From IMG/VR virus record IMGVR_UViG_3300020147_000065, positions 62,001 to 126,000 of that record: a DNA stretch of 64,000 bases. One strand, 5' to 3'. The position numbers and the translations under genes were made by a program. Within the stretch, counting starts at the first letter, position 1. Every line of letters starts with the position of its first letter. Shown piece after piece: positions 38,597 to 57,511 of this stretch. The notes below the pieces were generated by a model, which made no database searches, had not been told where the DNA came from, and worked only from the letters and a program-made list of their open reading frames with translations.

Positions 38597-39084
38597 TAGA
38601 AACTATTAATCGTCCAAACGATTGGATACTTGGAGTGCTGTCCACGGGGGTTTATGCAAAGGAAATTCCTCTGAGGGAATACGAGAATTGGGAAGTTGAA
38701 CCTGAATTAACCTTATATGTCGTATTTTATGATAATTTACTTAATTTACGTAGGGCCAGTTCAATTTTTAATCCAGAAGCAGAGAAAGATACCAATTCTG
38801 TTGGTATCTTTCAACCTTTTCAATTAATTAATTTCAACGTTAATCCTGATGGAGAAATGCATCCAGCGATTGGCTTTTTGCGCACCAGCATTACACGCGA
38901 TAGAGCCTGTATTTTAAGTCATGAGGCTTATCATGCTGCCAATGAGTGGGCGAGAAGGAAGGGAATTAATTTCGACTTTGCTGAGGAAATAACAGACAAT
39001 GAAGAACACATCGGCTACATGATGACTTACATCACAGATGAAGTTTATAAATGTAGAGATAAAGCAAAAGCCATGATCGTTTGA
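38593..39084 (+). CDS. HExxH zincin-like protein
   Basis: LSHEAYHA...EEHIGY. Confidence 0.65.
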   Translation: MIETINRPNDWILGVLSTGVYAKEIPLREYENWEVEPELTLYVVFYDNLLNLRRASSIFNPEAEKDTNSVGIFQPFQLINFNVNPDGEMHPAIGFLRTSITRDRACILSHEAYHAANEWARRKGINFDFAEEITDNEEHIGYMMTYITDEVYKCRDKAKAMIV

Positions 39085-39095
39085 TCATGGCTTTT
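39066..39095. terminator. Bidirectional terminator between convergent blocks
   Basis: AAAAGCCATGATC-gttt-GATCATGGCTTTT. Confidence 0.8.
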
Positions 39096-39106
39096 ATCAC
39101 ATTTAA

Positions 39107-41928: not shown

Positions 41929-44900
41929 TAGTCCACTCTGCTTCCTACCGGAAGCCCTCTAACAGAGATTTCCTCATGGGAGTGACCGTCCTCATCGGTC
42001 ACAACCATCGTTATACGACGAATAAAGTACACGTACTCATTTTCGTCAGGGGTTGTTATATTAATGGTAGCCGACTGGGAAATCAAATCTACCTCAAGAA
42101 CTTCACTGTAATCCCCATACTGCTTAACAGTCTCGTCCTCCTCGTTCACTATCAGGTTATAAGCTCTAACCTTGTAAAGGTATTTTCTACCTCGTCCCAA
42201 GAAATCAATATAACTTCCAACGGGAAGGTTTTCTGCTGTTAGAGGGTCTGGTAGTTCCAAAACATCATCTGGTTTATCGGCTGGAGCCAACCATTCATGG
42301 ATTGGGGTAGTGCCATAATCGGGAGTAGATGTCTTTTCTGCTCTCCATAGCTCTACACCATCAATCGGGTGACTACTTGATTCTTTCCAGGGGGCCGACT
42401 GAATGAAGACCTGGTGGTGGCTAAACGAACCAGAAACACCGAATACGTTTGTTATATCTCCAATATGCAACGGTGCATCCTGTTTTAGAGGAGTTAACGC
42501 CGTTTCAGTTAGATTCATAACTTGACCCGCTAAGGGACCAAGTACTTCACCTGAGTTGTTTGAGGCAACCCATCGAAGATCGTATTGATCTCCTGGTGTA
42601 AGATTTTTTAAGTTAATGACAACAACTGTACCGTTAGCCCAAGGTGCAACAGCAGCTTTCATTACCGTTCTACCGCTGTTTGTATAACGGTAAAGAGTAA
42701 GGTCATCACATCTTATTGGATAATTCCAATCAATTACGATGTCCATACGAGAAGCTTCTACGTTATCGTAAATGACTTCTCCGGGTAATCCGGCGGCCAA
42801 CTTTAATGTTGTTGCACTCGATTCAGGGCCTTCTACTTCATCCGTTGTGTTCCAAGAAACTGCACGGAAGAAGTATTCAGTGTCAGGTGTCAATCCTTCA
42901 AGAGTATATTCATCTCCTCCATCGAAGCTTACTTCTCCGCTGGAGTCTTCTATTCTATTCCAGGTGTCTCCATCCAGACTGTATTCAAGATATAGTCCAG
43001 TTGCCCTTGCAGGTAAAGCCGGAAGTATTAGATCAATTGTATAACGACCAATAAGCCCAGCAGTTACCAATCCTGGTACAGCAGGTGCAGCAATGTTTGT
43101 TGTTACAGCTAATGATAATCCTCTTCTTGCTTGAGGAGGATCACTATTTAACCACGCCACTGCCGCGAAGTAATATAAGGTTGATGGTGACAGACCTGTA
43201 ATATTTACAGTTGCTCCACCAGCGTAATCGGTACTATCGGTTTCCGTCCACGGGCCGTTAAAGTGAGGTGCTTTCCAGACACGTAAAGACGAAGCGTTTT
43301 CCGGTAACGCTGGAAGTGTTACCGTTACTGTAGTATCTGTTTTTGATACTAAAATAAGATTACCGGGTTTATCGGGGGATTCGCAGTCTCCTCCACCAGA
43401 ATTACTATCGCTGCTTTCAGAAGATACCAAACTCTGTTCTGATTCAGATGACATTGAATCACTTGAAGAAGAACTGTCTGGTTCGTCACTTGACACAGGA
43501 TTGCTCGATACAGGTTCACTACTTGTATCTGGGTCGCTTGATGCAGGGTCGCTTGATGCAGGGTCGCTTGATGCAGGGTCGCTTTCGAGATTACTACTTG
43601 ATTCCAGCGAGTCCGACGAAACGGACGAGCTGATTAATTCCTCAGAAGAAATACTTGTTTCATCCGAAGAATCAGAATTAGACGATAAAGATGCTCCGTT
43701 TATACGTAGGCATCCTGAGAAGCAAGCTCCTCCTGCAACTCTACCTCTTAGCTCATATATACCATCGGGCGCATCGAAAGGTGTGGTTAATCCCCAACTA
43801 CGAGCAGCGTCATTTAGTATTGTCGCTGTAAATCCATTGTCTTCAACACCAGGCGCTTCTGTCCAGAAATATCCAGAGTCAATGTGTCTGAGTGTCCAAC
43901 CCGTGGCAAGCACACTACCATTAACAGTAGGACATAGACCATCATATAGAGAAAAGTCAATGTAGCTACCGGCCTCTACCTCAGGAGGAGTAGCTTCACA
44001 CGCAATTACTGGTTCTGAGCATGGATTACTTTCTACCACATCGAATGTGGCCATTGCACAACGACCATCAAGAGTTTTTACGTAAACCTTGTAGTCATTG
44101 GCCTCAACCGCAGCAACGGGTACAAACAAACTAATTTGACCACTGCCTTTTATTCCAGCTTTGAATCCCGGAGTACCGTTGACACCTATTCTACCGGCAG
44201 AAACAGTAGCATTAGAACTATCTCTGACCTCCCAGTGGTCGGCAGATAACCATGCGATAGGAGCAGTACTTTCAGGCACCATAGCTCCACCACCAGGATG
44301 TAGGTATCGGTAATTACCACTACTACATTCGGTTACCTCTTCATCTTGTACCTCAATACAGAAAAGATTGGAATGTACTGACTCCTCATCTTCATACAAG
44401 AATCTGAGCTGATAAATTCCAGGATATAATAATCCAGGAGGAAGTTTAGCTGTGTATTCGTAGGTAGATGTAACATCTTTTGTTACATCGAAGTAACTAC
44501 CTAACGCACCTTGTAGAACCAAACCTTGACCATTGTACAAGGCCCAGTTGTTCTCAGTTGGGTATGCTAACCAATCGTCTTCATCGGTTACTGTTGCGGG
44601 TACATAGGGTGAAATAACCTGCTCGGTATCATCGCTGATAACCGTTGTTCCGGCAAAGCTTGGATCATTACCACAGAAAGTGTCCTTAACTTCTGCGAAA
44701 GTGAATGTTGCAGGATCACCAACAACTTCTTCATTGGTGTAACTGTTGTTGGCTCGTAATCTTACTTTATATGTTGCTCCCTGAACCACTTCAATAAATG
44801 GTGGATATAGAGTAACCTCAGATGGTCGAACGGAACCATAGACACCATATGGTGCCCAGGTAACGCCATTATCAGGACTGTATTCTAATGTCTCTAAAGT

Positions 44901-47366
44901 AAGTCCACAAGAACCGATAGCGTTAGCCAACGCAGGTAAAGCTATTGTTACAGCAGTTTCATATGCTTTAACAACCGTAACTGTTCCCGGCTTGATAATC
45001 TCACAATCTGGATCGTCTGTTGATAGACTTCCTTCTGCTACAACATCTAATACGAAACACCCTTCGAGCGTCGTAGTATCCCATTCGCGTGTGAATGTAT
45101 TATAGTTGTGTCTAACCAGAGCCAATACTTCATATTCAGCTCCATCAACTCCGTTTGTGGAGTCTTGGGCACTTATGAGTAATTGACCACCAAGAGATGA
45201 AACAGACCATCCGTTATTGACGGTGTTGCTTGCAATAACGGTGTCTAAGGCTTTCCTACGAATTATCCACTGGTCTACCCACTGGATTTCCTGTAATAGA
45301 GGATAAGCATCAACAGCATGATGACCGTTTGTTGTAATAGTCTGACAGACAGAAGTTGAAGTTAGATCACTAAACTGTTCCGAACTTAATACTTCTGTTA
45401 CGGTTGTAAAACAATTACTTCCGCCCGGACACCAACGCCAAGGTTGTTCCTTATCTTTTAACTGCCAATCAATTGTGTAATTGTGGCCCGGTGTAAGTCC
45501 TTTACCTACGCCTACATTAATTACGTAACCTACTCCAGCAGACCAGTAACTACCCACAACATTCCAATCATTTGGATTTGGAACTTCTCCTGGCCAAACC
45601 AAAGAAATTACTTCATTGGTATCCGAATCTCGAACTCTCCAATATGCAATCCTACAATTAACACCAGGAATTGGATTTTGATTGCGTATTTGAAAGAAAT
45701 TAGTATCGGCACTAATGTTTACACAATTTTCATCAGGCCAACTAAAACTATCAACTGGTTCAGATGATTGAACGGGTACCGGACAGTTTGTATCTCTTAT
45801 AGCTACAGCTTCGGCCTCAGTTTCGTAAGGTCCATGTGCAGTCCAATTTTCGATAAAGAAGGGGGTTTCATAATAACCAACGAAACCTCCACCAACATTA
45901 TAATTATCTGAGTCAGGACAGAATGCATACCAACCTATTCCAGGCCATTCTGATGACATGGAAGAGGATGAACCTTGCGGAAGAGCAATACCTTCAGCAA
46001 AGTAGAAAGGATTCACGTCTCCGTTGGAGTTTACACCCGCAATGTAAATATTTAAACCATAAGTTTGTGCTGGCCACTCGGTTAAACCAAAGGTAGCAGG
46101 TGTGATCACCCAATCTTCATCATTAGGTAGGTCTTCAATTGTCTCTGCCCAACTATTATGTGTTCCAGCAATCCAAGCGTAAACTTTAGCTGTATCCCAT
46201 TCTGGAATGTCTTCGTTGCAATATTCAAGTAATGGGGTTATTACTACTTGAGTATCACTGGCCTCTTTTACAGAAATTTTTGGTTGATCCGCATAAGACC
46301 ATTTGGTGGTCATGGCGCTTGGAGTCGAGTTATATACTTCCCCACCACAATCAACCTTAGAGAGGATACGAAACTGATATTCAGTATTTGGGCAGATAAG
46401 ATCGGGTCCAATTCTTACCGCAAAAGATGGTCCATATGTACCACTACCCGTAACACTCTGTGCCGTTATCCAGTCGGTATCTCCAACCTTTCTGAATTGG
46501 AAATCATAGATGTCTGCATTGAATTCTGTATCTACAGGGAAGAATACATCAAAACCAATGTAACCATCTGGCTCTTGATACACTTGCTGATAACCGCGCG
46601 ATTGCCACACGATTGGGGCATCCATTGCAGCAGGAACAGGACAAGTTAAAGTAATACTGTCGTAGCACCCACGAGCGGTTGTTACTGTGGCAACTCGTTC
46701 TGATTCAGTGAAATTATCACCCTGAAATGTTACGAATTCCTCTCTGTTACCAGAACCAGAAGTTGTGTGAGTGTTTTCTGTGGTAGAACCATAATCATAT
46801 AGTAATTCTCCAGCATTAGATGAATATCTAACAGGATAATAAACAATATACTCAACAACTCTTGGTGAACCACTTGTATCAAAGACATCTGCCAGAGTCA
46901 TACGAAGAGGTTGATCCCAGGGAATCCAACCTTCACTAATATGCTCATTAAAGGAAACATCTACCCACTTAGCTCTGATTCTGCAATTGTAGCCACCTTC
47001 AACCCAGTTTGGTACTATGACTGTATCTACACCACTATCTCGAGGTAAATCAACGTCTACCCAGTCATTACCTTCTTCAAGAATTGTAGGGCCATACGCT
47101 AAACCACTTGTAATATACGAATAAGTACCACTATCAACTTCAACATCGCTTTCGTCATAAGCGGTCCAGTTAACTTCATATTCACTGTCTGGTGTTAAAC
47201 CTTGTAGTGAGCGAAAGTGTGATAATAATACACCAGTGAAGCTACCCACGGGAGTAGGATTGCCGACGGGGTTAACCGTGAAATCATAATGATGAACGGA
47301 AACATCAGATTCGCAGCGGAATACTGTAATATGAGATGCGTTGGCTACTACTGAAACATTAATCAT
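41928..47366 (-). CDS. Large FN3/Ig-like repeat virion protein with Ser-rich linker
   Basis: FN3 signatures GLTPDSEYEV, GLSPSTLYYF, GLTPDTEYFFRA, NLTPGDQYDLR; Ser-rich region. Confidence 0.75.
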   Translation of the reverse strand: MINVSVVANASHITVFRCESDVSVHHYDFTVNPVGNPTPVGSFTGVLLSHFRSLQGLTPDSEYEVNWTAYDESDVEVDSGTYSYITSGLAYGPTILEEGNDWVDVDLPRDSGVDTVIVPNWVEGGYNCRIRAKWVDVSFNEHISEGWIPWDQPLRMTLADVFDTSGSPRVVEYIVYYPVRYSSNAGELLYDYGSTTENTHTTSGSGNREEFVTFQGDNFTESERVATVTTARGCYDSITLTCPVPAAMDAPIVWQSRGYQQVYQEPDGYIGFDVFFPVDTEFNADIYDFQFRKVGDTDWITAQSVTGSGTYGPSFAVRIGPDLICPNTEYQFRILSKVDCGGEVYNSTPSAMTTKWSYADQPKISVKEASDTQVVITPLLEYCNEDIPEWDTAKVYAWIAGTHNSWAETIEDLPNDEDWVITPATFGLTEWPAQTYGLNIYIAGVNSNGDVNPFYFAEGIALPQGSSSSMSSEWPGIGWYAFCPDSDNYNVGGGFVGYYETPFFIENWTAHGPYETEAEAVAIRDTNCPVPVQSSEPVDSFSWPDENCVNISADTNFFQIRNQNPIPGVNCRIAYWRVRDSDTNEVISLVWPGEVPNPNDWNVVGSYWSAGVGYVINVGVGKGLTPGHNYTIDWQLKDKEQPWRWCPGGSNCFTTVTEVLSSEQFSDLTSTSVCQTITTNGHHAVDAYPLLQEIQWVDQWIIRRKALDTVIASNTVNNGWSVSSLGGQLLISAQDSTNGVDGAEYEVLALVRHNYNTFTREWDTTTLEGCFVLDVVAEGSLSTDDPDCEIIKPGTVTVVKAYETAVTIALPALANAIGSCGLTLETLEYSPDNGVTWAPYGVYGSVRPSEVTLYPPFIEVVQGATYKVRLRANNSYTNEEVVGDPATFTFAEVKDTFCGNDPSFAGTTVISDDTEQVISPYVPATVTDEDDWLAYPTENNWALYNGQGLVLQGALGSYFDVTKDVTSTYEYTAKLPPGLLYPGIYQLRFLYEDEESVHSNLFCIEVQDEEVTECSSGNYRYLHPGGGAMVPESTAPIAWLSADHWEVRDSSNATVSAGRIGVNGTPGFKAGIKGSGQISLFVPVAAVEANDYKVYVKTLDGRCAMATFDVVESNPCSEPVIACEATPPEVEAGSYIDFSLYDGLCPTVNGSVLATGWTLRHIDSGYFWTEAPGVEDNGFTATILNDAARSWGLTTPFDAPDGIYELRGRVAGGACFSGCLRINGASLSSNSDSSDETSISSEELISSSVSSDSLESSSNLESDPASSDPASSDPASSDPDTSSEPVSSNPVSSDEPDSSSSSDSMSSESEQSLVSSESSDSNSGGGDCESPDKPGNLILVSKTDTTVTVTLPALPENASSLRVWKAPHFNGPWTETDSTDYAGGATVNITGLSPSTLYYFAAVAWLNSDPPQARRGLSLAVTTNIAAPAVPGLVTAGLIGRYTIDLILPALPARATGLYLEYSLDGDTWNRIEDSSGEVSFDGGDEYTLEGLTPDTEYFFRAVSWNTTDEVEGPESSATTLKLAAGLPGEVIYDNVEASRMDIVIDWNYPIRCDDLTLYRYTNSGRTVMKAAVAPWANGTVVVINLKNLTPGDQYDLRWVASNNSGEVLGPLAGQVMNLTETALTPLKQDAPLHIGDITNVFGVSGSFSHHQVFIQSAPWKESSSHPIDGVELWRAEKTSTPDYGTTPIHEWLAPADKPDDVLELPDPLTAENLPVGSYIDFLGRGRKYLYKVRAYNLIVNEEDETVKQYGDYSEVLEVDLISQSATINITTPDENEYVYFIRRITMVVTDEDGHSHEEISVRGLPVGSRVD
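43531..43584. repeat. 15-bp tandem repeat, about 3.6 copies (encodes SDPAS on the minus strand)
   Basis: GGGTCGCTTGATGCA x3 plus GGGTCGCTT. Confidence 0.95.
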
Positions 47367-48314
47367 TTATACTCTCACTGCTCCTGATGGTGTAGTCCAG
47401 TTAGCATCAAAAGGAGATTCACCGTTGTTTAAGACCATTCTATAAGTAATAGTCCAACGACCATCTGGTAGTCTGTATTTTCTGAAAATTTCTATATTCC
47501 CATCTGCATAAGGAGATTGTACAAAAGCAGTAGGCCCATACCAGTATGCACAACTACCATCCTGATATTCCCAACGGAATTCATACCATCTACCATTGGC
47601 AATATAGTGAACAACTTCGGTAGGTGTTCCTTCGATAACTTCAATAATTCTATAGCGATCAAGAATGTAACCCGTTGTGGTTCCAGCACCAACTTCTATA
47701 TCCATTGTGCTTAGTTCAGAGAAGTTAACGAAACCCCAGTTAGCTTGGCTTCCGGTGGCACCGGGAGGGGTGCCACCTGTGGGACCATTAACCCATCTCA
47801 TACCTAATCTTACAGCAGATGCTCCAGTCCCAGCAATAAAATCGGATTGAGGTGCAGCAATGGTAAGGTAGCAGTGTTCGCCACAAGTGTTTACCAAACT
47901 CAGATCAGGCAAACCAGGTGTAGGAGCAACCATACCATCCATCGTCGCAACTTCATCTGGATCGGGGACGTAATCTATATCAGTGACTACTGAACCCTGT
48001 GAACTTTGGTTAGAACTTGAGTCTTCATACCATATACGATATGTTGCGTTTATAACAACGTTTTGAATTGTAAACGATGTCACAGAGCCATTTATGGAAC
48101 CCAAAACCGCAGAGCTTGGTTCGATATTAGAACCACCACACTCTCCCGAAGGACCACCACAGGTACCATCTATGCTATATCGAGGATAAACGGTTTGACC
48201 TGTAGTAGAGGGGTCAGGAGGATAACCAGCACCACCATCATACGCTAAAACGTCGAATGTGATTGTTTTGGAATCATTATGAAAAACTATGTTTGAGGGA
48301 GCTGGGTATGGCAT
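47367..48314 (-). CDS. Putative virion protein (Ig/FN3-like)
   Basis: Beta-rich, Gly/Ser/Thr-rich; directly upstream of the large FN3 protein. Confidence 0.55.
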   Translation of the reverse strand: MPYPAPSNIVFHNDSKTITFDVLAYDGGAGYPPDPSTTGQTVYPRYSIDGTCGGPSGECGGSNIEPSSAVLGSINGSVTSFTIQNVVINATYRIWYEDSSSNQSSQGSVVTDIDYVPDPDEVATMDGMVAPTPGLPDLSLVNTCGEHCYLTIAAPQSDFIAGTGASAVRLGMRWVNGPTGGTPPGATGSQANWGFVNFSELSTMDIEVGAGTTTGYILDRYRIIEVIEGTPTEVVHYIANGRWYEFRWEYQDGSCAYWYGPTAFVQSPYADGNIEIFRKYRLPDGRWTITYRMVLNNGESPFDANWTTPSGAVRV

Positions 48315-48323
48315 TTAATTACC

Positions 48324-48914
48324 TTATCGGGTGTGATGTACTGCGAAAGTGTCCAGATATTCATCTGGATTATAAATCTCTCCAGGAGCACCTTTTATGA
48401 AAGCTGGTTCATGAACTCTAACAATTGTTTTGAGCGGAAGCATATATCTGCTAAACCATGCTGAGCCGGTTTGTGCGTATAATGGTAAATGCTTACAATT
48501 TTCGATATTACCTGCAACATCTTCTACCATTTGCCCCACCGTGGGATGCCCTTGAACGAAACCAAATATAGAATTGGTAAATGGACGAATGGCATCAGGT
48601 TGAATAGAAGCGATGAAACCTTCATACTTCAATAGATATTGAATAGGATGCAGACATTGATAATCCATGTCTGCATAGATTCCACCATACTTGCTTATTA
48701 ACTCAAGACGAAGAACATCCGAACGTATTAAAACGTTCGGATGAGTCTCTATTAATTCTTGATTGACGAAGCTTTCGTTCTTAATGCTATCATTCGTCCA
48801 AAGAATTACTTCTAAGTCAGGATTTATGTCTATCCAAGTCTGCATATAAAAACGCGAGATCATTGGAACTGGTTTATTTCCCAACCAGACGAGGTGTAGT
48901 TTTGGTGTTATCAT
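48324..48914 (-). CDS. Glycosyltransferase, DXD sugar-binding family (GT32/OCH1-like)
   Basis: LHLVWLG, RSDVLRLE..YGGIYADMD, TGS. Confidence 0.88.
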   Translation of the reverse strand: MITPKLHLVWLGNKPVPMISRFYMQTWIDINPDLEVILWTNDSIKNESFVNQELIETHPNVLIRSDVLRLELISKYGGIYADMDYQCLHPIQYLLKYEGFIASIQPDAIRPFTNSIFGFVQGHPTVGQMVEDVAGNIENCKHLPLYAQTGSAWFSRYMLPLKTIVRVHEPAFIKGAPGEIYNPDEYLDTFAVHHTR

Positions 48915-49530
48915 AAGTTCGGGTGCCCTCGAATTGGTGTACTCCGATGGTATCTTTCGTCACACTACCTTTTCCATCATAGTTCAACGGAATGAAATAC
49001 TTATTAGGTAACTTGATTACATGAGGTTCAATCATATCAAGTAAGTAGAATGAACCAACTGAGTATGTTATGTCTTCGTTTTTTCTTTCCTCATATCTTG
49101 CTGGAAGACCGGCGATAACTTTCGCTAACCACGGGTCTTTAGGTTCTGCGCCCATCTCACAGTTACATGGGTGTTCAGGAGTACGCATTGAGATATGCGG
49201 AGTTTTAGAGCGTATGCTATCAGGGATCGGTTTAACTGGTTCTGTATCCAGATCAATCCAAAGTCCGCCCGTTCTGTAGAGAAGTTCGTACCTTAATATG
49301 TCTGACTTTCCTCTTAGATCGTTTATTTGATCATATAAACGATAATTATTTAGAAAAGGAATTGTCTCATCTACCAAAAGATGGACTTGCCAGGTTGGGT
49401 TTAGTTCCTGCCAACGCTTATGCCATTCTAAAAGATGTTCGGGTATCGGTGATGGACCAATCCATGCTTGATAAATGATTTTAGGTATCATTTTGTAAAA
49501 TCTCCTCATAGAGAAGATAGTCTTCTCCAA
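48874..49530 (-). CDS. Glycosyltransferase, DXD sugar-binding family (GT32/OCH1-like); start probably 49491
   Basis: MIPKIIYQAWIG, KSDILRYELLY..GGLWIDLD. Confidence 0.88.
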   Translation of the reverse strand: MEKTIFSMRRFYKMIPKIIYQAWIGPSPIPEHLLEWHKRWQELNPTWQVHLLVDETIPFLNNYRLYDQINDLRGKSDILRYELLYRTGGLWIDLDTEPVKPIPDSIRSKTPHISMRTPEHPCNCEMGAEPKDPWLAKVIAGLPARYEERKNEDITYSVGSFYLLDMIEPHVIKLPNKYFIPLNYDGKGSVTKDTIGVHQFEGTRTYDNTKTTPRLVGK

Positions 49531-50539
49531 TCAGTCCTTTTAATAACGTGCCCTCAGGGTCTGCGATCCCCTGCTTGAGCCTGTGCCCCATACCAATCCC
49601 CGATTCTCCTGGTAGACCTTTTACACTTACATGTAATCCTTCATTTTGTAGAATTGTTTTATTTCCACTAAATGATCGCCACAGCGCAAGGTCAATCATT
49701 GGTCTTCCTTGCTCGGCAATTGATATTACGAATGGTTTTAATTTACCTTTAAATCCGGTTTGAGCGAGACTACTATGCTCAAAGTTCTTGATGTTTCGAT
49801 AAAGCTTTCTACTTAAATGATAATATATGGCGGGACTGTTACCTACCAAATCGTACTCTTTAAGTTTTTTCAGCATTATTTCAATGTAATTAGAAGAATA
49901 CCAGTCATCATCTTCTACGACGAGGATATAATCGGCATCTGTATGTTTTAAACCGACTTTTAGATTTTCACAGAGGCTATGACCCTCTCCGTCTTTTGGA
50001 GTTCTTTTGATAATCTTTTGTCTGTAATCTGAGTAATCATACTCCTCGTTTCCATCATTGACGACAACCCATTCAAAATTACGATGAGTTTGTCTACCCA
50101 TCCATTTTTGAGTAAGATCGAACGCCTTAGCACGATTCCTTGTGGGTGTAATCAGAGCAACTTTTTCATCAGTTTGCTCGACAGTTTCTAAGATCATCCC
50201 CGTGGTTAGCGAAACAAGAGCTACCGATCTCCATATGGATTTCTCGAACGTATATTCACCATTAACAGACATGTCTGAATTAGGATTGGTTGCTAAAAAA
50301 GACATTGCCTGTTGAACATCTTCTTTCGTCATCCATGCTTCACCACGGCCAAAGGTCACGAAATCATATCCTTCTTCTCTACAGAGGGAAAAGAGTTCTG
50401 GAAAGTTTTCAACATCAATTTTTGGTACACTCTTGATTCTATATGTTTCAAAATAAGGCAGGTAATTTCCTTGAATAATTGAAACAATTTCAGAAGTTAT
50501 TTTACCTTCGACAACAATCAATATTCCCTGGTGGTTCAT
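49481..50539 (-). CDS. Glycosyltransferase family 2 (GT-A)
   Basis: ALITPTRNR, EWVVVNDG, VEDDDWY. Confidence 0.85.
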   Translation of the reverse strand: MNHQGILIVVEGKITSEIVSIIQGNYLPYFETYRIKSVPKIDVENFPELFSLCREEGYDFVTFGRGEAWMTKEDVQQAMSFLATNPNSDMSVNGEYTFEKSIWRSVALVSLTTGMILETVEQTDEKVALITPTRNRAKAFDLTQKWMGRQTHRNFEWVVVNDGNEEYDYSDYRQKIIKRTPKDGEGHSLCENLKVGLKHTDADYILVVEDDDWYSSNYIEIMLKKLKEYDLVGNSPAIYYHLSRKLYRNIKNFEHSSLAQTGFKGKLKPFVISIAEQGRPMIDLALWRSFSGNKTILQNEGLHVSVKGLPGESGIGMGHRLKQGIADPEGTLLKGLIGEDYLLYEEILQNDT

Positions 50540-51888
50540 TTCTTCTCCAAAACAGTGAGTCCGTGGTTGTTAGTTAGGTACATCTGTAGTCGCCAGTCGG
50601 AATTTGCTTTTAGGAACTCAGCGATGGCTCTCCATACTCCCTCTTCTTTACCTTCACCATTATCACCATATGTTGTGGTGTCATGCAAAACAATGTACTT
50701 CTTTGCTTTCGAGGCATGTTTGTTCAAATCAGCTTTCATGCGTGAATATGTATGTGGTGTATCAATGAAAAGAAGATCGGTTTCAGGAATATCTGTTTCC
50801 TGACTATCATTCACGAAATGTCTGACGTTTACACCTATTTCTTTAGCTGCTTCTTGCACTTCTTTGAATACAGGAGAAGGTGTTTTGTCATAAGTATTTA
50901 CTACTTTTGGCCGTCCAAAGGCAAAAGCAGCAGTTGAACTTCCAAGATGTGTTCCCATTTCGGTGACACTATCACAAAGTGACGCAAGTCTGGACAGCAA
51001 TTCGATGTGCTGATTAATATCTGTTTTATCAGTAAATGCTCTGGTATAGAGCAACTTAATCTTCATTGGTTTAACCTCATACATGTTTTCGGTGACAATT
51101 GGTTTGCTACATTTCCCAGTAGCCCTCATTACCGCTTCTTCAAAGGGTAGATAATCAAACGATTTTAGAGCTGAATCCTCATAGCAATTATATACGCGAC
51201 AACCAGAAGCTTCCATTGCCGGTCTAATTGCTGAGAGTCGGTCGTTTAAAATCTTGTAAGTTCGGTTGTTGTTTCTAATTGAACCAGAAGAACGATATTG
51301 TGGAAAAGCGTAATTGTTTGTTTGGTCGACACTCATTTTGAAATCGGCACCAAGCAGATAAATCTCCCCTGCCCCAAGCCACCAGAGCAACTTTAAAGCT
51401 ACAAGGAAAACGCTTCTGCTACCCGCGTGACCAAATTCATCAACTTCCTTCTCAGAATTTCCCCAGTTAAATGTTTCCTCTTTAAGAAAAGAAGAACTGG
51501 AATATTTAGCATTTCTCCGATAATACAAAACCGATGGAGAATCTAAAACTGTTTGAGATGATGGTATGATGGCCCCATCTTCATTTCTACATGAAAGCCT
51601 GGCACCCTTGTGCCCCTCAGGAGCGAATTTAATTATTTGAGGGTCTTGCCATATATGTTCAAGGAAGTTTGTTGGACTATCTACAAAAGTCCAGAAGTTG
51701 GGTCTGAACACCGCAGGTGAATTGTTCAGACCCATTGTAACGATTCCTCTTTGATTAAGTAAATCTAAGTTGAGGTCGTTTAAAGATGGTCCACTGGCAA
51801 TAAGAAATGCCGGTGAACCATTCAATAAACCCTCAAGAGGAACACGTTGTGCCGTATTATTCAAAACCCAACATTTAGGTCTATCCAT
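50536..51888 (-). CDS. Fusion of a DUF115/MAF-like domain and a class I SAM methyltransferase
   Basis: IASGPSL..GLN, EIYLLGADF (N-terminal half); EMGT..GSST, DLLFIDTPH, IVLHDT, GV..AI.EFL (C-terminal half). Confidence 0.8.
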   Translation of the reverse strand: MDRPKCWVLNNTAQRVPLEGLLNGSPAFLIASGPSLNDLNLDLLNQRGIVTMGLNNSPAVFRPNFWTFVDSPTNFLEHIWQDPQIIKFAPEGHKGARLSCRNEDGAIIPSSQTVLDSPSVLYYRRNAKYSSSSFLKEETFNWGNSEKEVDEFGHAGSRSVFLVALKLLWWLGAGEIYLLGADFKMSVDQTNNYAFPQYRSSGSIRNNNRTYKILNDRLSAIRPAMEASGCRVYNCYEDSALKSFDYLPFEEAVMRATGKCSKPIVTENMYEVKPMKIKLLYTRAFTDKTDINQHIELLSRLASLCDSVTEMGTHLGSSTAAFAFGRPKVVNTYDKTPSPVFKEVQEAAKEIGVNVRHFVNDSQETDIPETDLLFIDTPHTYSRMKADLNKHASKAKKYIVLHDTTTYGDNGEGKEEGVWRAIAEFLKANSDWRLQMYLTNNHGLTVLEKK

Positions 51889-51889
51889 C

Positions 51890-54800
51890 TTAAATAATCC
51901 GAGCGATTGCCGGGACCTTCATCCTTTCTAATTGTGGTGCTGCCAGAACTATGACTTCGATACCCCTACTATATGGTTGAGGTGTCTTAGTTAATCTTTC
52001 AAAGCGCACACGTTTATTAAAAGTCTTCAATAGAGCTGACTGTTCGGTTGGATCAAAGTTGCCTGATTCATCCTTAGTAATAGGAATATAGTCTTCTTCC
52101 CTTGCTTCACGATACCAGGCAATTCGATAACGCCGATCCAATTCGGTCAAGCGATGATCGAGTGTCGTATCAACCAACTCAAACATATTCACCGGTGCTC
52201 CATGAGGAGGTAAGTAAATAATCTTCCAGAGTGTTCCTGGCGGCATTCCTTTTTCTGCGTCGTCGGCATCATCAGGATCACAAGGTACAAACACACCAGC
52301 GATAATTTTACCAACCACAGGTTTGTCTCCAATCAATCTGATGACTGGACAAGTAACCGGATTGTAAGGAAAACCAATTATGACTGGACAATATCGAGAA
52401 TTCCATCCGAGTAAAATTCCTCGTCCATATGCTGGATCATTTGGATCGTATGGAAGTGAGCCGGTTGTCAGACAGTAAGATAATCTACTACCTGAAACAA
52501 ACTTTTCAAGATATACACCTGATGCTGTGTCACTTGGAATCCAGCATTCCCCATCCCATACAATGTAAGGAGGTAAACAGCTCAAGTCGGTGATTCCATA
52601 TACTGTTTGCAACAAACTCCTTTCAATCCAGAAGCAGACTCCGTCATCCCATTGAAGTGTTGCAGGTTGAATATAACGTGGGCACCAGGGATCGGTTGCT
52701 CCACTACCAATTGCAATACCAGGATAGGAAATCAAATCATAGGTACTGGGTAATGAACCATTTTGGATATAACACATCGTGTCTACACTCAATTGCTGTT
52801 CAAGATAAACTTGATTATCAGCAACTTCCGTAGCTGGCACCCAACATAAAGTATTATTGTTGAGCACAAGATATTGTGGTAAATCAGAAGGCTCAAGACC
52901 AAAAGAATCAAGGTAATCAATTAGGATACAAAAGTCTTCGGAACATCCACGAGGAACGATTGGTGGTCCAACCTCTGTCGAGCACCACTTGTTTCCGCAG
53001 ATAGCCAGAGCACGGTTATCCCAGTCTGTTACATCATAAGGCCATTCAGGACTTAGATTTCCAACTTCCTTGAGTTCATAACAAAATCTTTCTGTCCCAA
53101 CAGTCTTTTCGAGATATAACCCCGTGGTTGGCTCACTTGTTTCTGGTACCCAGCACTGTGAACCACTAAGCCATGATAGAAAATCAGGTAATAGTTCGAC
53201 TCGTATACCATAATGGTAACGAAGCTCGGCAATTTTACCACAGAAAGAATTAGTACTTGGTCGCCATACTATGATAGGCACTTCTGTCTTCTTAGTACAC
53301 CACGGACCATCAATGGTGACGAAGGAAATACCACCATACCCATCCACGGGACAGTTAGGTTCAGGTGTAGAGCCTTGTACTAAAGAATAACATACAAGAT
53401 CACCATTAACAGATAACTCAAGATAGCTCACCGAAGTATCCGTCGGCTCCGTGGCCGACGGAAGCCAACAACCCGTTACGGAATCCCATACAAGGAAGGG
53501 AGGAAGCATATTGGGAGTAATACCGAAATCTCTTTCTAAAAGTTCTTTATCAATACAGTAGCAGGTACATCTGTCACAACTACAATACCACGTTGGTGAA
53601 TCATAGTCTACAGGACACCACTCATGGTCGTTTCTGAGTAATCCTCGATTACACCAGTCACTTGCGTCATAAGGTAATGAACCTGTGCCCTGATAAATTA
53701 CTTCGGTTGCTGTTACACTCTTCGTCAAAGAGTAATCAGTTGTAGCTACATCATTGTCCCAGCAATAACCCTGGAAATTGATTACAGCATCTAATAAAGA
53801 ATCAGTTGGCTCAAGACCATAACGATACTTTAAATTCTCTATGCTAACAACAAACTGATCATCAGCATCACGATAGATGAGTAATGTTTGTGGGCGAGGT
53901 CTTACTCCCCACGGTGATAAACCACCATATTGAATAGCATCATTGGTGTCTGCGGTTATTGCATATGGTAAGGCTCCACCAGGTACGTATACAATACGGT
54001 CTGGTGTAGCAAGAATCTGTTTTTCAAGGAATGTAGTACCGGCGATGTCCGAAGGTACCCACTCATCTACTTCCCAGTTAAGGTAATCCGGTAAGCTATC
54101 GGACGAGTTGATATAAAGCCGTGACTTCACATCGAAGTCAAGCATTACGAATCCGGCGTCATCAGCATCGTAAACAAATGCGAAATTGTCTTCCGGCATT
54201 CTCTCAGGGCAGGGCGCACAATAAGATACTTTTCCGTTTGTTATTGTGCGCGTGAGATAAAACGTGTTGTCTTCCGGTGGATTGTTTTTCAACACCCATT
54301 CTCCATCGAGCCACCACCAATAAGGAGCGAAGTCCTCTATGTTCCCGGTGTTCTTTGGGAAACGTAAACCGCCGCAGTTGGCCAAAATCTCCTGAAAAGC
54401 GGCACCTGCACCGGCACCACTTCTTTCTGTTTCGAGATATTGGCCACCAGTTGTTGCGGCGTAATCTTGCATGATCTCAACAATTCTCTGGTTATAGTAA
54501 GTGGGAACATAAACCGCGGAAACAAGGATGCCTTTTTCCATAGCTTTTACAGCCATTTCATGAGCGAAGACATCGTCTCGACCATCTTCATAACCTGATA
54601 TGCCAATATCATGGGGATGAGCGTCAGTTACCAGAATAGCAATCTTTAAGACATTTTTCCTAAATGGGGTAAAGTCTCCATTCTGACCTGGGCGTTCTGC
54701 TAACTCATCTACAACCGTTTGTAATGCGGCGGACGAGGCTTCAGGCTCGTCGCCACCGCCGCCAGCCGTTAGCGCGGAAATAGCAGCAATTACATCGTTG

Positions 54801-57511
54801 TCGTTTTGAGCACCGAAAGGAACATGAACCGTTACATCATCTTTGAAGCTGACCACGGACATTCGGTAGTCTCCACCTGAAATTTCGTGGATCAAGTTCA
54901 TTGTGTCAAGTAATTCATTCTTAACACTTTCTAATGTTCCGCCCATGCTACCCGTGTCGTCAATAATAAACGCTACGTCGGTAGGACCACATAATGAACC
55001 TGGTTCATTTCCTGTGGAAGCTTCGGCCACAAGGTCAGAAACAAAACAGTTCAAGAATCTGTCCCATGTGAACATTACTGGACGACCATCATAATCTACT
55101 TCAGCGATGTACTGGTTCTCGTAATCAACGACCTTGTTTCCACCTGTTCCACTGATTACCTTATAGCCGATGACCAAAAGCTTCCATACGTCAGGATTGT
55201 CTGTTGGATAAGGTGTGGCTTTAGTAACACGAAACTCAAAATCAAGTTCTCGCCATTTTTCTCCGTCCGTAAGAGCAAATATTGGTTCTTCTGAACGATA
55301 GGCGTCAGTTACAACCCCTTTATCGTTAGGCACACCTCTTCCTCTCTTACCGAATAACAACATATTGTTGTTAACATTTATTAAGTGTTGCCATTGATAC
55401 TCACGGGCATCAAATTCACGACTTGTGTCGAGAACGGTTGTGGTAATATCACCCGTTTCTTTTGTTTTCCTTTGCCAACCAGACGAGCCGAGGCTAACCA
55501 ACCCCTGGATTGCATTTTCATATCCAGTTGGTTTTTCCTCTACTACTCCCCATAGGTTGTTCATCCATTTTTCAATGGACATGGGTCCATGAAAAGGTGT
55601 GCCTTCTGACGCGTTTTTCTGATTACCATTTACTTGATAAACGGCATTAAAGAATGGCGATACAGAAGAAAATGAACCAAGCTTTTCTCCGGCATAGTAA
55701 AGAGTATTCCCGATAGATTTTAATGCTTGTCCACCAGGAGAACCAGATGTGTTTAAAGGATAAGACAACAACCTGGTAGTAACAGTTGGACGATTGACGA
55801 ACAACTTGTAAAGAGTGGTTTTGCTTAATAAGAATACATCACCGTTATCAGAAATCTCAATAGATGTTGCAGAGTGATCCTGTAATGAACCCTCGACAGT
55901 TAAAGAGAAAGGATTAGGTGTTGTGGCAATGACTACCGCTTCAAGACCTGAATCAGTAGAGACATTTTCTTTGATGTTCCAAAGAGTTATGTAGTTACCC
56001 TCTGGAGTAGATCGTTCTCCAGCAGCTAATATACTTCCAGCTTCAGCCAGTACAGTACCGTCATTTTGCACGAGATCGTTTTGAAGATATATCACTTTGT
56101 TGATATATCGCATCATGGGATCAAGACTGTAATAAATTCGGTTTTCTCCAGCATTTGTGATAGATTCCTCAAACATTTGCCATTCATTAATAATGATTTC
56201 TGTTCGAGGCCCAACCACGGTGTCTTCATCAAAGTAAACTGTTTTACTTTGACTGGCTGTAAACTTAATTCGATAGGATTTATATGCGACATCATTCTCA
56301 AAAGCAAAGAATGAAACCTGACCGTGCTTAATAGTGGAGTTTGTGATTACTTGGAGAATATCAAATGTGGCGAAATCATCATTAGATGCTTCAAGTTGCC
56401 ATGATTTAGGGAGCCATGTGATGGGTCCACCGATTCCACATAAGAGCGCATAACTCTTGATTATCTTTTCGTTTCCTGTGCCGTAATCAAATGTGAGGTA
56501 TGCTGGGAGTTCTCCACCATCATCATTTTGATTTTTAGTCGTCCAGAAATCATTTCCAGTACCATTAAATGCATTTTCAGCGAGATCATCATTGTAAGAA
56601 GCTGATGAAGTACCGCCACCCTGTGCTTGATCCACAAATACTGGGCGCTCAATGCGATATAAGGTTGGTCCTGCTGTGTTTATTGTAGACTCGTTATAAG
56701 TCCATGTTGCAGGTAAAGAAGAGGAGTCCTGACATAGAATTTTTAAAGTTGTCCATTCTCCATCTGATTCACCAGCACCAGTTAGATAACCAATCCACTT
56801 GGGGTTGTCTTTCTGTACACCTGAAGCAAGGATTGCAGCTCTTTGTAGAAGCAAAGGGTGATTGCGGTCAGAAGGTACTTTTCCAATGTTATAAAAAGGA
56901 TCATATACCCATGATTTACCATCTTCAATATATGTTACAGCAGCGGTTGGTTTGTATCCAGGAGGAAGCAAATAAGGTTGTTCCGCTCTAACTTTTATAC
57001 GAAGTAACAGAGAACCTGGTGAAAGCGTAAACACACCACTGGTGATTTTACCATCGGTGGCAGCACTCTGTTTAAATGAACCGGCGGCCATTATGTACCC
57101 GGTTTCACTCTCTTGAATTTCGTAAAGGTAAGTTGGATTTACTGAAGCGGCTGCATTATCGAGGGAGAAGGAAAATCTGTATTCGCCCTCTTCTACAATT
57201 TGTACTCTATCTCCCCCGTGGGTTGCTTGTGTAGAAGTCCCTAACAGCTTTAAATCACGAATACGAGTCTTAATAACAGGAGAATAAGCACCACGGACTA
57301 AAGCACCTTTACCACCGGCTCTACCTTCTGTAAGAAAGTCCCAGGTTTCAAAGTCGCTTTCCCACGAATCTGTTTGAGCACAAACCCAGTATGCATCAGC
57401 AAGACGGAAGGTTTCTTTTGCAATAAAAGTATATACCTTTCCATTAACTACGTGTCCCTGTATGGGCTTGATGATGTCAACAATGTTAACCTTTGGATTT
57501 CTTAGTGCCAT
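51890..57511 (-). CDS. Large virion protein with discoidin (F5/8-C)-like domain, vWA domain and Cys-rich repeats
   Basis: AENAFNG..W...PKSWQLEASND...YRI; VAFIIDDTGSM, GGGDEPEA, LVTDAHPH; LP.YL.W...CW.P repeats. Confidence 0.75.
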   Translation of the reverse strand: MALRNPKVNIVDIIKPIQGHVVNGKVYTFIAKETFRLADAYWVCAQTDSWESDFETWDFLTEGRAGGKGALVRGAYSPVIKTRIRDLKLLGTSTQATHGGDRVQIVEEGEYRFSFSLDNAAASVNPTYLYEIQESETGYIMAAGSFKQSAATDGKITSGVFTLSPGSLLLRIKVRAEQPYLLPPGYKPTAAVTYIEDGKSWVYDPFYNIGKVPSDRNHPLLLQRAAILASGVQKDNPKWIGYLTGAGESDGEWTTLKILCQDSSSLPATWTYNESTINTAGPTLYRIERPVFVDQAQGGGTSSASYNDDLAENAFNGTGNDFWTTKNQNDDGGELPAYLTFDYGTGNEKIIKSYALLCGIGGPITWLPKSWQLEASNDDFATFDILQVITNSTIKHGQVSFFAFENDVAYKSYRIKFTASQSKTVYFDEDTVVGPRTEIIINEWQMFEESITNAGENRIYYSLDPMMRYINKVIYLQNDLVQNDGTVLAEAGSILAAGERSTPEGNYITLWNIKENVSTDSGLEAVVIATTPNPFSLTVEGSLQDHSATSIEISDNGDVFLLSKTTLYKLFVNRPTVTTRLLSYPLNTSGSPGGQALKSIGNTLYYAGEKLGSFSSVSPFFNAVYQVNGNQKNASEGTPFHGPMSIEKWMNNLWGVVEEKPTGYENAIQGLVSLGSSGWQRKTKETGDITTTVLDTSREFDAREYQWQHLINVNNNMLLFGKRGRGVPNDKGVVTDAYRSEEPIFALTDGEKWRELDFEFRVTKATPYPTDNPDVWKLLVIGYKVISGTGGNKVVDYENQYIAEVDYDGRPVMFTWDRFLNCFVSDLVAEASTGNEPGSLCGPTDVAFIIDDTGSMGGTLESVKNELLDTMNLIHEISGGDYRMSVVSFKDDVTVHVPFGAQNDNDVIAAISALTAGGGGDEPEASSAALQTVVDELAERPGQNGDFTPFRKNVLKIAILVTDAHPHDIGISGYEDGRDDVFAHEMAVKAMEKGILVSAVYVPTYYNQRIVEIMQDYAATTGGQYLETERSGAGAGAAFQEILANCGGLRFPKNTGNIEDFAPYWWWLDGEWVLKNNPPEDNTFYLTRTITNGKVSYCAPCPERMPEDNFAFVYDADDAGFVMLDFDVKSRLYINSSDSLPDYLNWEVDEWVPSDIAGTTFLEKQILATPDRIVYVPGGALPYAITADTNDAIQYGGLSPWGVRPRPQTLLIYRDADDQFVVSIENLKYRYGLEPTDSLLDAVINFQGYCWDNDVATTDYSLTKSVTATEVIYQGTGSLPYDASDWCNRGLLRNDHEWCPVDYDSPTWYCSCDRCTCYCIDKELLERDFGITPNMLPPFLVWDSVTGCWLPSATEPTDTSVSYLELSVNGDLVCYSLVQGSTPEPNCPVDGYGGISFVTIDGPWCTKKTEVPIIVWRPSTNSFCGKIAELRYHYGIRVELLPDFLSWLSGSQCWVPETSEPTTGLYLEKTVGTERFCYELKEVGNLSPEWPYDVTDWDNRALAICGNKWCSTEVGPPIVPRGCSEDFCILIDYLDSFGLEPSDLPQYLVLNNNTLCWVPATEVADNQVYLEQQLSVDTMCYIQNGSLPSTYDLISYPGIAIGSGATDPWCPRYIQPATLQWDDGVCFWIERSLLQTVYGITDLSCLPPYIVWDGECWIPSDTASGVYLEKFVSGSRLSYCLTTGSLPYDPNDPAYGRGILLGWNSRYCPVIIGFPYNPVTCPVIRLIGDKPVVGKIIAGVFVPCDPDDADDAEKGMPPGTLWKIIYLPPHGAPVNMFELVDTTLDHRLTELDRRYRIAWYREAREEDYIPITKDESGNFDPTEQSALLKTFNKRVRFERLTKTPQPYSRGIEVIVLAAPQLERMKVPAIARII

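Follow-up and report, generated by a model that had tools for sequence, protein, structure and literature searches.

The DNA considered here is a 64,000-nucleotide window (bases 62001-126000) of the 221,108-bp viral contig IMGVR_UViG_3300020147_000065 from IMG/VR, and its subject is a cassette of four co-oriented genes which lie between the gene of a 1873-aa giant protein and the genes of a 315-aa and a 1812-aa protein (Table 1). The source is a single contig whose ends overlap by 186 bp and which carries 36 tRNA genes, its completeness was estimated at ~89% in the IMG/VR record, and the DNA of this uncultured phage came from a soil metagenome represented by DNA runs only. The cassette encodes a 450-aa protein in which a Maf-like domain is fused to an O-methyltransferase domain, a GT2 protein, and two GT32-like proteins (GT32a and GT32b). 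Both the four tightly packed genes and these identities had been proposed in a first-pass annotation of the window; the layout was borne out by the open reading frame (ORF) list and the gene junctions, and the identities by Pfam and structure models.

The cassette genes are translationally coupled. The stop codon of the 1873-aa gene and the start codon of the 450-aa gene are 1 nt apart (TAA-G-ATG), the 450-aa and GT2 genes share a 4-nt ATGA overlap, and GT2 and GT32a overlap by 11 nt and GT32a and GT32b by 41 nt. Only 9 nt separate GT32b from the 315-aa gene, and the genes beyond it abut or overlap by one base. GT32a probably starts at the ATG at 49491, which yields a 205-aa protein beginning MIPKIIYQAWIG. 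Transmembrane-like segments were found in none of the four proteins, all of which are predicted to be soluble. A perfect palindromic hairpin with an 11-bp stem (window 48716-48743) lies in the GT32b coding sequence and was listed on both strands by the terminator scan. No GenBank phage relatives were found for either the cassette DNA or the 450-aa protein.

ORF mapping over the whole contig placed the cassette in one 50-kb minus-strand block. At the upstream end of this block the PHROG scan identified the large terminase (TerL, genome 146183-148930, 5.9e-13) and the major capsid protein (genome 142066-143190, 1.4e-32), followed by about eight small genes and then by genes for proteins of 2537, 679, 1277, 448, 248 and 186 aa. 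The Cys-free 2537-aa protein is possibly the tape measure, and the 248-aa protein is exonuclease-like (57856-58602, minus strand, between the 448-aa and 1873-aa genes in the window; phrog_298 at 1.2e-19, no Pfam match). Next come the 1873-aa gene, the cassette, and the 315-, 1812-, 652- and 287-aa genes, after which the block ends at a terminator. The plus strand of the window carries a replication and nucleotide module with Prim-Pol, BCS1-like AAA, RecA, class II ribonucleotide reductase, primase and DNA polymerase. The cassette belongs to the late structural operon and occupies a distal position in the virion module, the usual place of fibre genes. Promoter-like sites were no commoner within the block than in shuffled sequence.

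Table 1. Coordinates of the cassette, its domains and the adjoining features (positions in the window)
Feature	Position	Strand	Description
Terminator-like hairpin	39065..39096	-	14-pair stem and T-rich tail; ends the operon
287-aa protein	39107-39970	-	one of the last two operon genes, start/stop-coupled to the 1812-aa gene
652-aa protein	39970-41928	-	one of the last two operon genes, start/stop-coupled to the 1812-aa gene
1812-aa giant protein	41928-47366	-	candidate glycosylation substrate; FN3 domains at residues ~1339-1610
Ser/Asp/Pro-rich low-complexity tract of the 1812-aa protein	43392..43697	-	residues ~1224-1325, just before the FN3 domains
315-aa protein	47367-48314	-	probably beta-rich; its gene separates the cassette from the 1812-aa gene
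Cassette, four co-oriented genes	48324-51888	-	between the 1873-aa and the 315/1812-aa genes; five intact-looking catalytic domains
GT32b, 196 aa	48324-48914	-	ORF list and Pfam
GT32a	48874-49530 (218 aa from TTG); 48874..49491 (205 aa from ATG)	-	ORF list and Pfam
GT2 protein, 352 aa	49481-50539	-	ORF list and Pfam
Maf-like/O-methyltransferase fusion, 450 aa	50536-51888	-	ORF list and domain evidence
Cation-dependent class-I O-methyltransferase domain (Methyltransf_24-like)	50536..51066, stop codon included	-	residues 275-450; Pfam and model
Maf/GT42 sialyltransferase-like glycosyltransferase domain	51070..51888	-	residues 1-273; AF2 model, VIA and profile motifs
1873-aa giant protein	51890-57511	-	discoidin-like residues ~297-424; VWA residues 845-1002; Cys/Trp repeats at residues ~1330-1660

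Catalytic domains of the cassette enzymes

The 450-aa protein was split into residues 1-273 and 275-450 by BLAST against database homologues. Alignments were made for each domain, with 55 sequences for the N-terminal domain (A2) and 34 for the C-terminal domain (A3), while a full-length alignment (A1) was set aside because the methyltransferase pieces were misaligned in it.

According to its AF2 model (pLDDT 95.7), the N-terminal domain has the sialyltransferase-like catalytic fold of Maf. The top structural match was Maf 5mu5 (VIA Z 14.1, 199 residues aligned, 19% identity), of which the alignment covered residues 255-517 only, out of 632 modelled. Other matches were the archaeal MptE kinase (M. 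jannaschii HPPK, Z 11.2), Cst-I and Cst-II (Z ~10) and ST3Gal-I (Z 9.6), and SteA and thiamine pyrophosphokinase were also among them. The profile of the Maf-like family retrieved Cst-II from PDB at E 1e-3, and in this profile-to-PDB alignment the CMP-binding motifs of GT42 (GNGPS-like; YLSGIDFY...YAF) were present. GPSL, LG(F/Y)xxIYLxGxDF...YAF and a Tyr equivalent to Tyr162 of Cst-II were common to the phage family and Cst-II, and the sialyltransferase family phrog_4603 was matched by the 450-aa protein at 4e-5. Pfam PF01973 (MptE-like/Maf) was reached at 1.9e-5 with 25.0 bits, below the gathering cut-off of 34.6 and with only residues 120-186 aligned, and the matches to it were weak in 37 of 70 relatives. 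The domain is not a strict Maf member, since it scored below this cut-off, lacked the extra domains of Maf and had neither flagellin nor nonulosonic-acid genes in its vicinity. Nor does it belong to GT42, because no residue aligned with the catalytic His188 of Cst-II.

For the C-terminal domain, Pfam PF13578 (Methyltransf_24) was matched at 1.4e-4 with 23.1 bits, below the cut-off of 26.3, and relatives reached 6.9e-27. Its model (pLDDT 95) gave Z 18.6 to the O-methyltransferase 8c9v and Z 17.5 (23% identical residues) to MeT1 of M. hassiacum, a sugar O-methyltransferase which acts in the synthesis of methylmannose polysaccharide. Z scores of 16-18.6 over ~165 of 181 residues indicated a class-I Rossmann fold of the O-methyltransferase type. 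The whole MeT1/COMT/CCoAOMT class scored alike (catechol and tRNA O-methyltransferases, Z 16-18; COMT-type enzymes, Z 16-17), so the fold cannot give the substrate class. The family-invariant D/H residues fell in a DLLFIDxxH motif. Homologues of this domain were joined to GT2, GT90 and FkbM in other proteins, and the fusion to glycosyltransferases here and in those homologues suggests that its substrate is a sugar hydroxyl. None of the database homologues used for splitting the protein spanned both domains, but the Maf-methyltransferase fusion is not unique, as five other representatives carried PF13578.

The 352-aa protein matched PF00535 (Glycos_transf_2) at residues 129-244 (5.5e-11, 43.1 bits, cut-off 23.3). 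It consists of an unassigned N-terminal domain (residues 1-120) and a GT2 domain (residues ~125-244) with an EDDD motif (VVEDDDWY). Its best solved relative was GalT1 (5hea, 3.6e-4), which acts in the extension of the Fap1 glycan. GT32a and GT32b are paralogues with 28% identity, and both matched PF04488 (Gly_transf_sug) above the cut-off of 23, GT32a at 6.4e-10 (40.0 bits) with a DLD motif and GT32b at 8.1e-14 (52.5 bits) with a DMD motif. For all three enzymes the matches to solved structures cover the DXD core only. The nearest for GT32a was Och1 (9n3s, 3.9e-5; 1.8e-3 with GT32b), and those for GT32b were protein-glycosylating GT-A enzymes, namely 6rtg (2e-8), Legionella SetA (2e-7) and the glucosyltransferase domain of TcdA (4e-6). 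These GT32b matches spanned 40-80 residues around the DXD core, which indicated a shared GT-A core and not a toxin. Assignment of GT32b to the TcdA/TcdB-type GT44 toxins (PF12919) was rejected, with 37 of 382 profile positions matched in a 196-aa protein, no full catalytic domain of ~540 aa with its helical N-terminal subdomain, and no toxin context.

A second cluster was found outside the window at genome 25438-30497 on the plus strand. It encodes a collagen-like GxQ-repeat protein (283 aa), a 296-aa protein, a GT32-like protein (247 aa) which is a third paralogue with 31% identity to GT32b, a fusion of GT2 with a class-I methyltransferase (449 aa) and a CarboxypepD_reg-like protein. The combination of GT32, GT2 and methyltransferase beside a fibrous protein occurs twice in this genome. 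The first-pass annotation contained neither this cluster nor the serine-rich tract of the 1812-aa protein as likely substrate.

Serine-rich giant proteins beside Maf-like genes

The 1812-aa protein contains Pfam fn3 and Pur_ac_phosph_N domains, and just before the former lies a tract in which serine reached 52.5% in a 40-aa window, the highest value among the 257 ORFs of the genome. This protein, two genes from the cassette, was also the only one of the 257 ORFs to reach 50% Ser+Thr in 40 aa, and the tract was modelled as disordered (pLDDT ~32). A perfect tandem repeat of 15 bp x 3.6 (43531-43584, 100% matches, found by TRF) encodes (PASSD)x3 within the tract and is likely a hotspot of length variation; two soil runs yielded no variant contigs over the stretch neighbouring the repeat, the repeat itself lying outside the compared stretch.

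On the other side of the cassette, the 1873-aa protein matched Pfam VWA (1.7e-12) and F5/8-C (4.9e-3), and its discoidin part matched phrog_17517 'tail protein' at 2.7e-8. Its Cys/Trp module (window 52400-53600), found by motif search, had at least four copies of LP.[FY][LI].W...CW[VLI]P at ~100-105 aa spacing, and it matched no family. The 315-aa protein had no Pfam or PHROG match. Atlas searches, which serve as leads only, pointed to FN3 and tip-attachment-protein-J Ig-like domains in the 1812-aa protein and, at low confidence only, to Ig-like/CARDB and DUF6531 in the 315-aa protein; the 1873-aa protein was searched in the same way. PHROG and Pfam scans of the tail-region proteins of this phage gave nothing useful.

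The Maf-like domain belongs to a large family which has had no name so far. Among 1.84 billion cluster representatives, 840 were retrieved at E<=1e-30 and 2520 at E<=1e-10, and none of the Maf-like homologues retrieved in the named protein database carried a functional annotation. In its 70 multidomain members every fused partner identified by Pfam was a glycan-building or glycan-decorating enzyme: Methyltransf_24 in six (the 450-aa protein included), other class-I methyltransferases in five, GT2, GT32-like and GT9 in three each, and further sulfotransferases, GT8, GT25, one pyruvyl transferase and one cytidylyltransferase.

In IMG/VR, 145 viral contigs had a Maf-like relative, and the neighbourhoods of the best 80 of these 145 were compared as 11 clusters at 60% identity. 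In nine of these 11 clusters the Maf-like gene had an ORF of at least 800 aa within 4.1 kb, and in six the ORF was directly adjacent. Many of the neighbouring proteins were rich in serine: a 1677-aa ORF with ~1450 aa of SSSES repeats (L085), a 465-aa serine tract (L074), ~200 aa of near-pure serine (L076), a ~100-aa tract (L001), two flanking giants which were both serine-rich (L078) and a 419-aa poly-serine protein (L093). In L092 the Maf-like gene and a methyltransferase gene were flanked by giants, one of them a 1259-aa S/T/P-rich protein in a tail module starting with the tape-measure gene. Over the mid- and low-GC loci, which the enrichment test covered, ORFs reaching 50% S/T in 40 aa made up nine of 50 within two genes of the Maf-like gene and four of 170 farther away (Fisher p=2.9e-4). 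The giants beside Maf homologues were also scanned with PHROG and Pfam, which gave nothing useful.

Other enzymes of the cassette also recurred at these loci. About 13 high-GC contigs had the order methyltransferase, Maf-like, ~500-aa gene, GT32 and GT32, located 2.5 kb downstream of a tape-measure gene (1.4e-49). The contig P0011 combined a Maf-like gene with GT25, a CmcI-type methyltransferase, GT2 and an FkbM methyltransferase. A homologue of the 352-aa GT2 protein with 35% identity was encoded directly downstream of the Maf-like genes in L103 and L121, and in L103 both genes lay beside a 2316-aa S/T-rich ORF. The separate methyltransferase beside Maf in L028 showed no homology with the fused one in hhalign (probability 0.3), and a hidden Markov model of the fused methyltransferase had no match in the IMG/VR loci; thus the recurring methyltransferase partner is analogous rather than orthologous.

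In cellular genomes the Maf-like family was found overwhelmingly in metagenome-assembled genomes (MAGs) of Planctomycetota (170 loci). Maf-like genes stood by giant S/T-rich ORFs in the Planctomycetaceae MAG contigs L099, L103, L108, L138 and L168. Most of the Planctomycetota loci represented one tape-measure-linked element, of which a chromosome has up to three copies and which looks like a prophage, a tailocin or a family like gene transfer agents. Its gene order was tape-measure protein, 272 aa, 346 aa, methyltransferase, Maf-like, ~530 aa and sometimes two GT32. In the Phycisphaeraceae chromosome CP054186.1 it occurred at 2.43, 2.62 and 2.76 Mb (L169, L147 and L125), with up to 98-100% protein identity to IMG/VR contigs. 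The closest relatives of the Maf-like domain of the phage studied here (45-48% identity) came from Planctomycetaceae contigs, likewise beside giant S/T-rich ORFs, which suggests a planctomycete as its possible host. In a further, phage-like lineage (L002/L003, 7294-9969; ~167 kb, GC 0.32) the Maf-like gene came after an 891-aa dockerin-domain protein and was flanked by a sugar epimerase/dehydratase and a hexapeptide acetyltransferase, which hints at a phage-encoded pathway for a modified-sugar donor.

Further features of the contig

The last two proteins of the operon (652 and 287 aa) had no family match in the Pfam and PHROG scans. Two genes of the window are unusual for a phage, one encoding the BCS1-like AAA ATPase (7082-8494, plus strand, BCS1_N 6e-20), and the other a PP2C-type protein phosphatase (32551-33375, minus strand, 8.6e-12). 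The tRNA genes lie at genome 195-217 kb, and two have suppressor-type anticodons (CTA at 208926-208998 and TCA at 216482-216555). Stop-codon recoding, at which these suppressor-like tRNAs hinted, was rejected: TAA, TGA and TAG ended 152, 79 and 26 ORFs, and the ORFs were intact under code 11.

Proposed function, alternatives and related systems

The cassette is proposed to O-glycosylate, in the cytoplasm, a serine-rich linker in the fibre-like 1812-aa giant and to O-methylate the resulting glycan, a reading to which we give a probability of about 0.58. A glycan on a virion appendage is favoured because the genes form an operon with structural genes, the enzymes are predicted to be soluble, hydroxymethyl-pyrimidine synthesis is absent, the methyltransferase has an O-methyltransferase fold and serine-rich giants recur beside Maf-like genes. 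The earlier claim of a multi-sugar, methyl-decorated glycan on appendages rather than on DNA thus remains the best-supported reading, with partial support.

The substrate, the order of steps, the donors and the place in the virion are what we infer in the following scheme. The four genes would be a late-expressed protein-O-glycosylation module of an uncultured jumbo phage, by which a short hetero-oligosaccharide could be built during virion assembly on Ser (or Thr) of the disordered Ser/Asp/Pro-rich linker, and other products of the same operon might be modified too. The first sugar may be attached by the Maf-like domain (its characterised relatives act on Ser/Thr of flagellin as O-glycosyltransferases) or by GT32b (direct glycosylation of proteins is the activity of its closest solved relatives). 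The chain would then be extended by GT2 and the other GT32-like enzyme, and the fused O-methyltransferase domain would methylate a sugar hydroxyl. Donor sugars would come from the host, and a CMP-activated ulosonic acid such as CMP-Kdo is plausible for the Maf-like domain. Published Maf enzymes are O-glycosyltransferases of Ser/Thr for which CMP-Kdo or CMP-Neu5Ac can serve as donor (bioRxiv 10.1101/2020.06.03.131540; PMC11339370), so host CMP-Kdo is a reasonable guess. The glycan could stiffen or extend the linker, protect it from proteases, or mask it.

Several observations weigh against this proposal. The lineages behind the S/T enrichment are few and only partly independent, which makes it indicative rather than conclusive, and no neighbour is clearly rich in serine in the largest Maf-like lineage, the prophage-like elements of Phycisphaerae with 65 IMG/VR loci. 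The tract of the 1812-aa protein is modest (~100 aa) compared with those of other lineages, and the 315-aa gene stands between it and the cassette. Homology ties neither the 1873-aa nor the 1812-aa protein to known virion proteins, and neither has a GenBank phage homologue. The first-pass annotation had called them giant virion proteins; it is their position, in a block starting with TerL and the capsid gene, which points to virion membership, and homology lends the term nothing. The exonuclease-like gene shows that the block is not purely structural. In the Maf-like domain the position of His188 of Cst-II falls in an insertion, no His is invariant in the 55-sequence alignment, and the domain also resembles MptE-type pyrophosphokinases; because of these features the domain's own glycosyltransferase activity is put forward as probable only. 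Finally, the genome contains no genes for NeuB, CMP-sugar synthetase, sugar epimerase/dehydratase or sugar nucleotidyltransferase, and since no nucleotide-sugar genes are encoded by the phage, the donors would have to be host-derived.

The enzymes could instead act on another protein of the phage or the host, for example the 1873-aa VWA/discoidin protein, the 315-aa protein, a capsid or tail-tube protein as in mycobacteriophage Che8, or a host protein during takeover as GT-A toxins and effectors do, which we consider unlikely. The 1873-aa gene directly precedes the cassette and the 315-aa gene directly follows it, and the nearest solved relatives of GT32b (SetA, YGT-like and TcdA) glycosylate folded targets. 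Giant neighbours without a serine-rich tract exist in L002 (the dockerin protein), L043, L037 and the Phycisphaerae elements, and the documented phage precedent concerns capsid and tail-tube glycans (PMC12619734 and PMC11256854, both citing Freeman 2023). However, the capsid and small tail genes are 25-30 kb off and have no S/T-rich extensions, the GT32-like proteins are catalytic cores only, with no targeting or delivery domains, and the serine-rich association was statistically enriched. Targets in the host envelope or in DNA are less likely. Remodelling of host lipopolysaccharide (LPS), capsule, S-layer or another surface glycan, which would block superinfection or the re-adsorption of progeny to debris in the manner of seroconverting phages, seems improbable. 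The GT2 protein weakly matched phrog_841 'GtrB-like O-antigen conversion' (4.5e-4), but GtrB itself is a membrane protein, whereas the four cassette proteins have no membrane segment and are not accompanied by any flippase, polymerase or lipid-carrier enzyme. Fusion partners of the family include LPS-type GT9, GT25 and GT8, accessory 'moron' genes are often near tail-fibre genes, close homologues occur in Planctomycetota chromosomes, and host-surface modification is the usual reading of large cyanophages with many glycosyltransferases (PMC12801897). Yet the genes are coupled to giant structural-type genes in a late operon, no lysogeny genes were detected in the window, and the link to serine-rich giants across lineages would be left unexplained.

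DNA hypermodification, in which the glycosyltransferases and the methyltransferase would decorate modified phage bases against restriction, has very little probability. Phage glycosyltransferases of diverse families classically glucosylate hydroxymethyl-cytosine DNA (as cited in PMC12619734), and a DNA methyltransferase adjoins the cassette in L028-type elements. In the 221-kb genome, however, no thymidylate-synthase-like hydroxymethylase was found, and the cassette is in the late structural operon and not in the plus-strand replication and nucleotide module. Its methyltransferase is of the O-methyltransferase class (COMT or sugar O-methyltransferase) and not a DNA methyltransferase, and the acceptors of Maf and the sialyltransferases, to which the Maf-like domain is structurally closest, are proteins or glycans. 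It is equally hard to credit that the Maf-like domain is a nucleotide-dependent kinase or pyrophosphokinase of MptE fold and that the product of the module is a glycan with a phospho- or other modification, or a cofactor, unrelated to the proteins encoded next to the module. The matched Pfam family is named for MptE, M. jannaschii HPPK was the second-best structural match with SteA and thiamine pyrophosphokinase also matching, and the catalytic His of Cst-II is missing; but Maf was the clear top match, the family profile retrieved Cst-II sialyltransferases and not kinases from PDB with shared donor-binding motifs, and the fusion partners were glycosyltransferases and glycan-decorating enzymes, a cytidylyltransferase included.

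Glycosylation of the serine-rich linker, the preferred reading, has partial parallels in several known systems. In serine-rich repeat protein (SRRP) adhesins (Fap1, GspB) and staphylococcal SD-repeat proteins, dedicated soluble glycosyltransferases are encoded beside a giant surface or fibre protein, and its long Ser-rich or Ser-Asp tract is O-glycosylated stepwise in the cytoplasm. The phage resembles them in having a serine-rich tract in a large protein near dedicated glycosyltransferases, with far longer tracts beside Maf-like homologues, and in the GalT1 likeness of its GT2 protein. The cassette is not an SRRP system proper because there is no GtfA/GtfB-type GT-B initiating pair (none of the four enzymes matched a GT-B family); it also lacks accessory Sec, and it differs in its viral context, where export is not relevant, its ~100-aa tract and its GT-A or sialyltransferase-like enzymes. 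Chlorovirus PBCV-1 A064R is a cytoplasmic multi-domain glycosyltransferase with a terminal sugar-methyltransferase domain, which gives a methylated glycan on a virion protein. It likewise joins glycosyltransferase and sugar O-methyltransferase in one virus enzyme, while its virus is eukaryotic, its N-glycosylated target is the capsid protein and its glycosyltransferase families are unrelated.

The Maf enzymes of Magnetospirillum (5mu5), Aeromonas (Maf1) and C. botulinum, besides being the closest in structure, are soluble and cytoplasmic like the phage protein and are encoded beside the filament-forming protein they modify (bioRxiv 10.1101/2020.06.03.131540; PMC11339370; PMC3426422), the substrate here being a candidate. 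In contrast, the phage domain is a bare catalytic core of ~270 aa fused to an O-methyltransferase, lacks the extra N- and C-terminal domains of Maf, and has serine-rich giants rather than flagellin or nonulosonic-acid synthesis genes as neighbours. Cst-I and Cst-II (GT42, Campylobacter jejuni) share the fold, the GPSL and LG(F/Y)xxIYLxGxDF motifs and the Tyr162 equivalent with the phage domain, which differs in having no His188 counterpart, and whose acceptor is probably a protein or protein-bound glycan and not lipo-oligosaccharide. In mycobacteriophages (Che8 and relatives; Freeman et al. 2023), phage glycosyltransferases put O-glycans on capsid and tail-tube subunits, and their genes are near the right genome end (PMC12619734 and PMC11256854 for the former, PMC11256854 for the latter), whereas those studied here are among giant fibre-like genes. 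This precedent, invoked in the first-pass annotation, holds in that phage glycosyltransferases modify the phage's own structural proteins; it is an analogy only, with different enzyme families and capsid or tail-tube targets. The literature searched contained no report of a Maf-like enzyme in mycobacteriophage virion glycosylation, and neither phage tail modules with Maf-like enzymes nor serine-rich phage fibres carrying glycans were described in it.

The cassette may be a variant of virus-encoded structural-protein glycosylation whose reach is wide, since both the enzyme family and the serine-rich proteins beside it are frequent among uncultured phages. More tentatively, and with somewhat less than even odds, many phages and Planctomycetota prophage-like elements would make serine-rich-repeat glycoprotein fibres, as viral equivalents of the bacterial SRRP adhesins. 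Maf-like enzymes would O-glycosylate the serine tracts, possibly with CMP-ulosonic acids of the host, and methyl, sulfate or pyruvyl groups would be added afterwards; the present cassette would be an elaborate five-domain example, and the 15-bp repeat would let the length of the glycosylated spacer vary rapidly. A testable rule follows: where a Maf-like gene adjoins the gene of a serine-rich giant, a glycoprotein is to be expected. The compact soluble enzymes could serve for engineering O-glycans, methylated ones included, onto serine-rich tags. If the proposal is true, it would bear on the modelling of tail fibres and receptor-binding proteins, on protease resistance and evasion of recognition, and on the annotation of 'auxiliary' glycosyltransferases in viromes, which are usually assigned to DNA or host-surface modification. 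To our knowledge, a few mycobacteriophages are so far the documented cases of glycosylated phage particles. On the proposed reading a far larger, unrecognised set of phages, including soil jumbo phages and Planctomycetota prophages, would glycosylate their fibres, and the enzyme would be a Maf-like family that is now dark matter.

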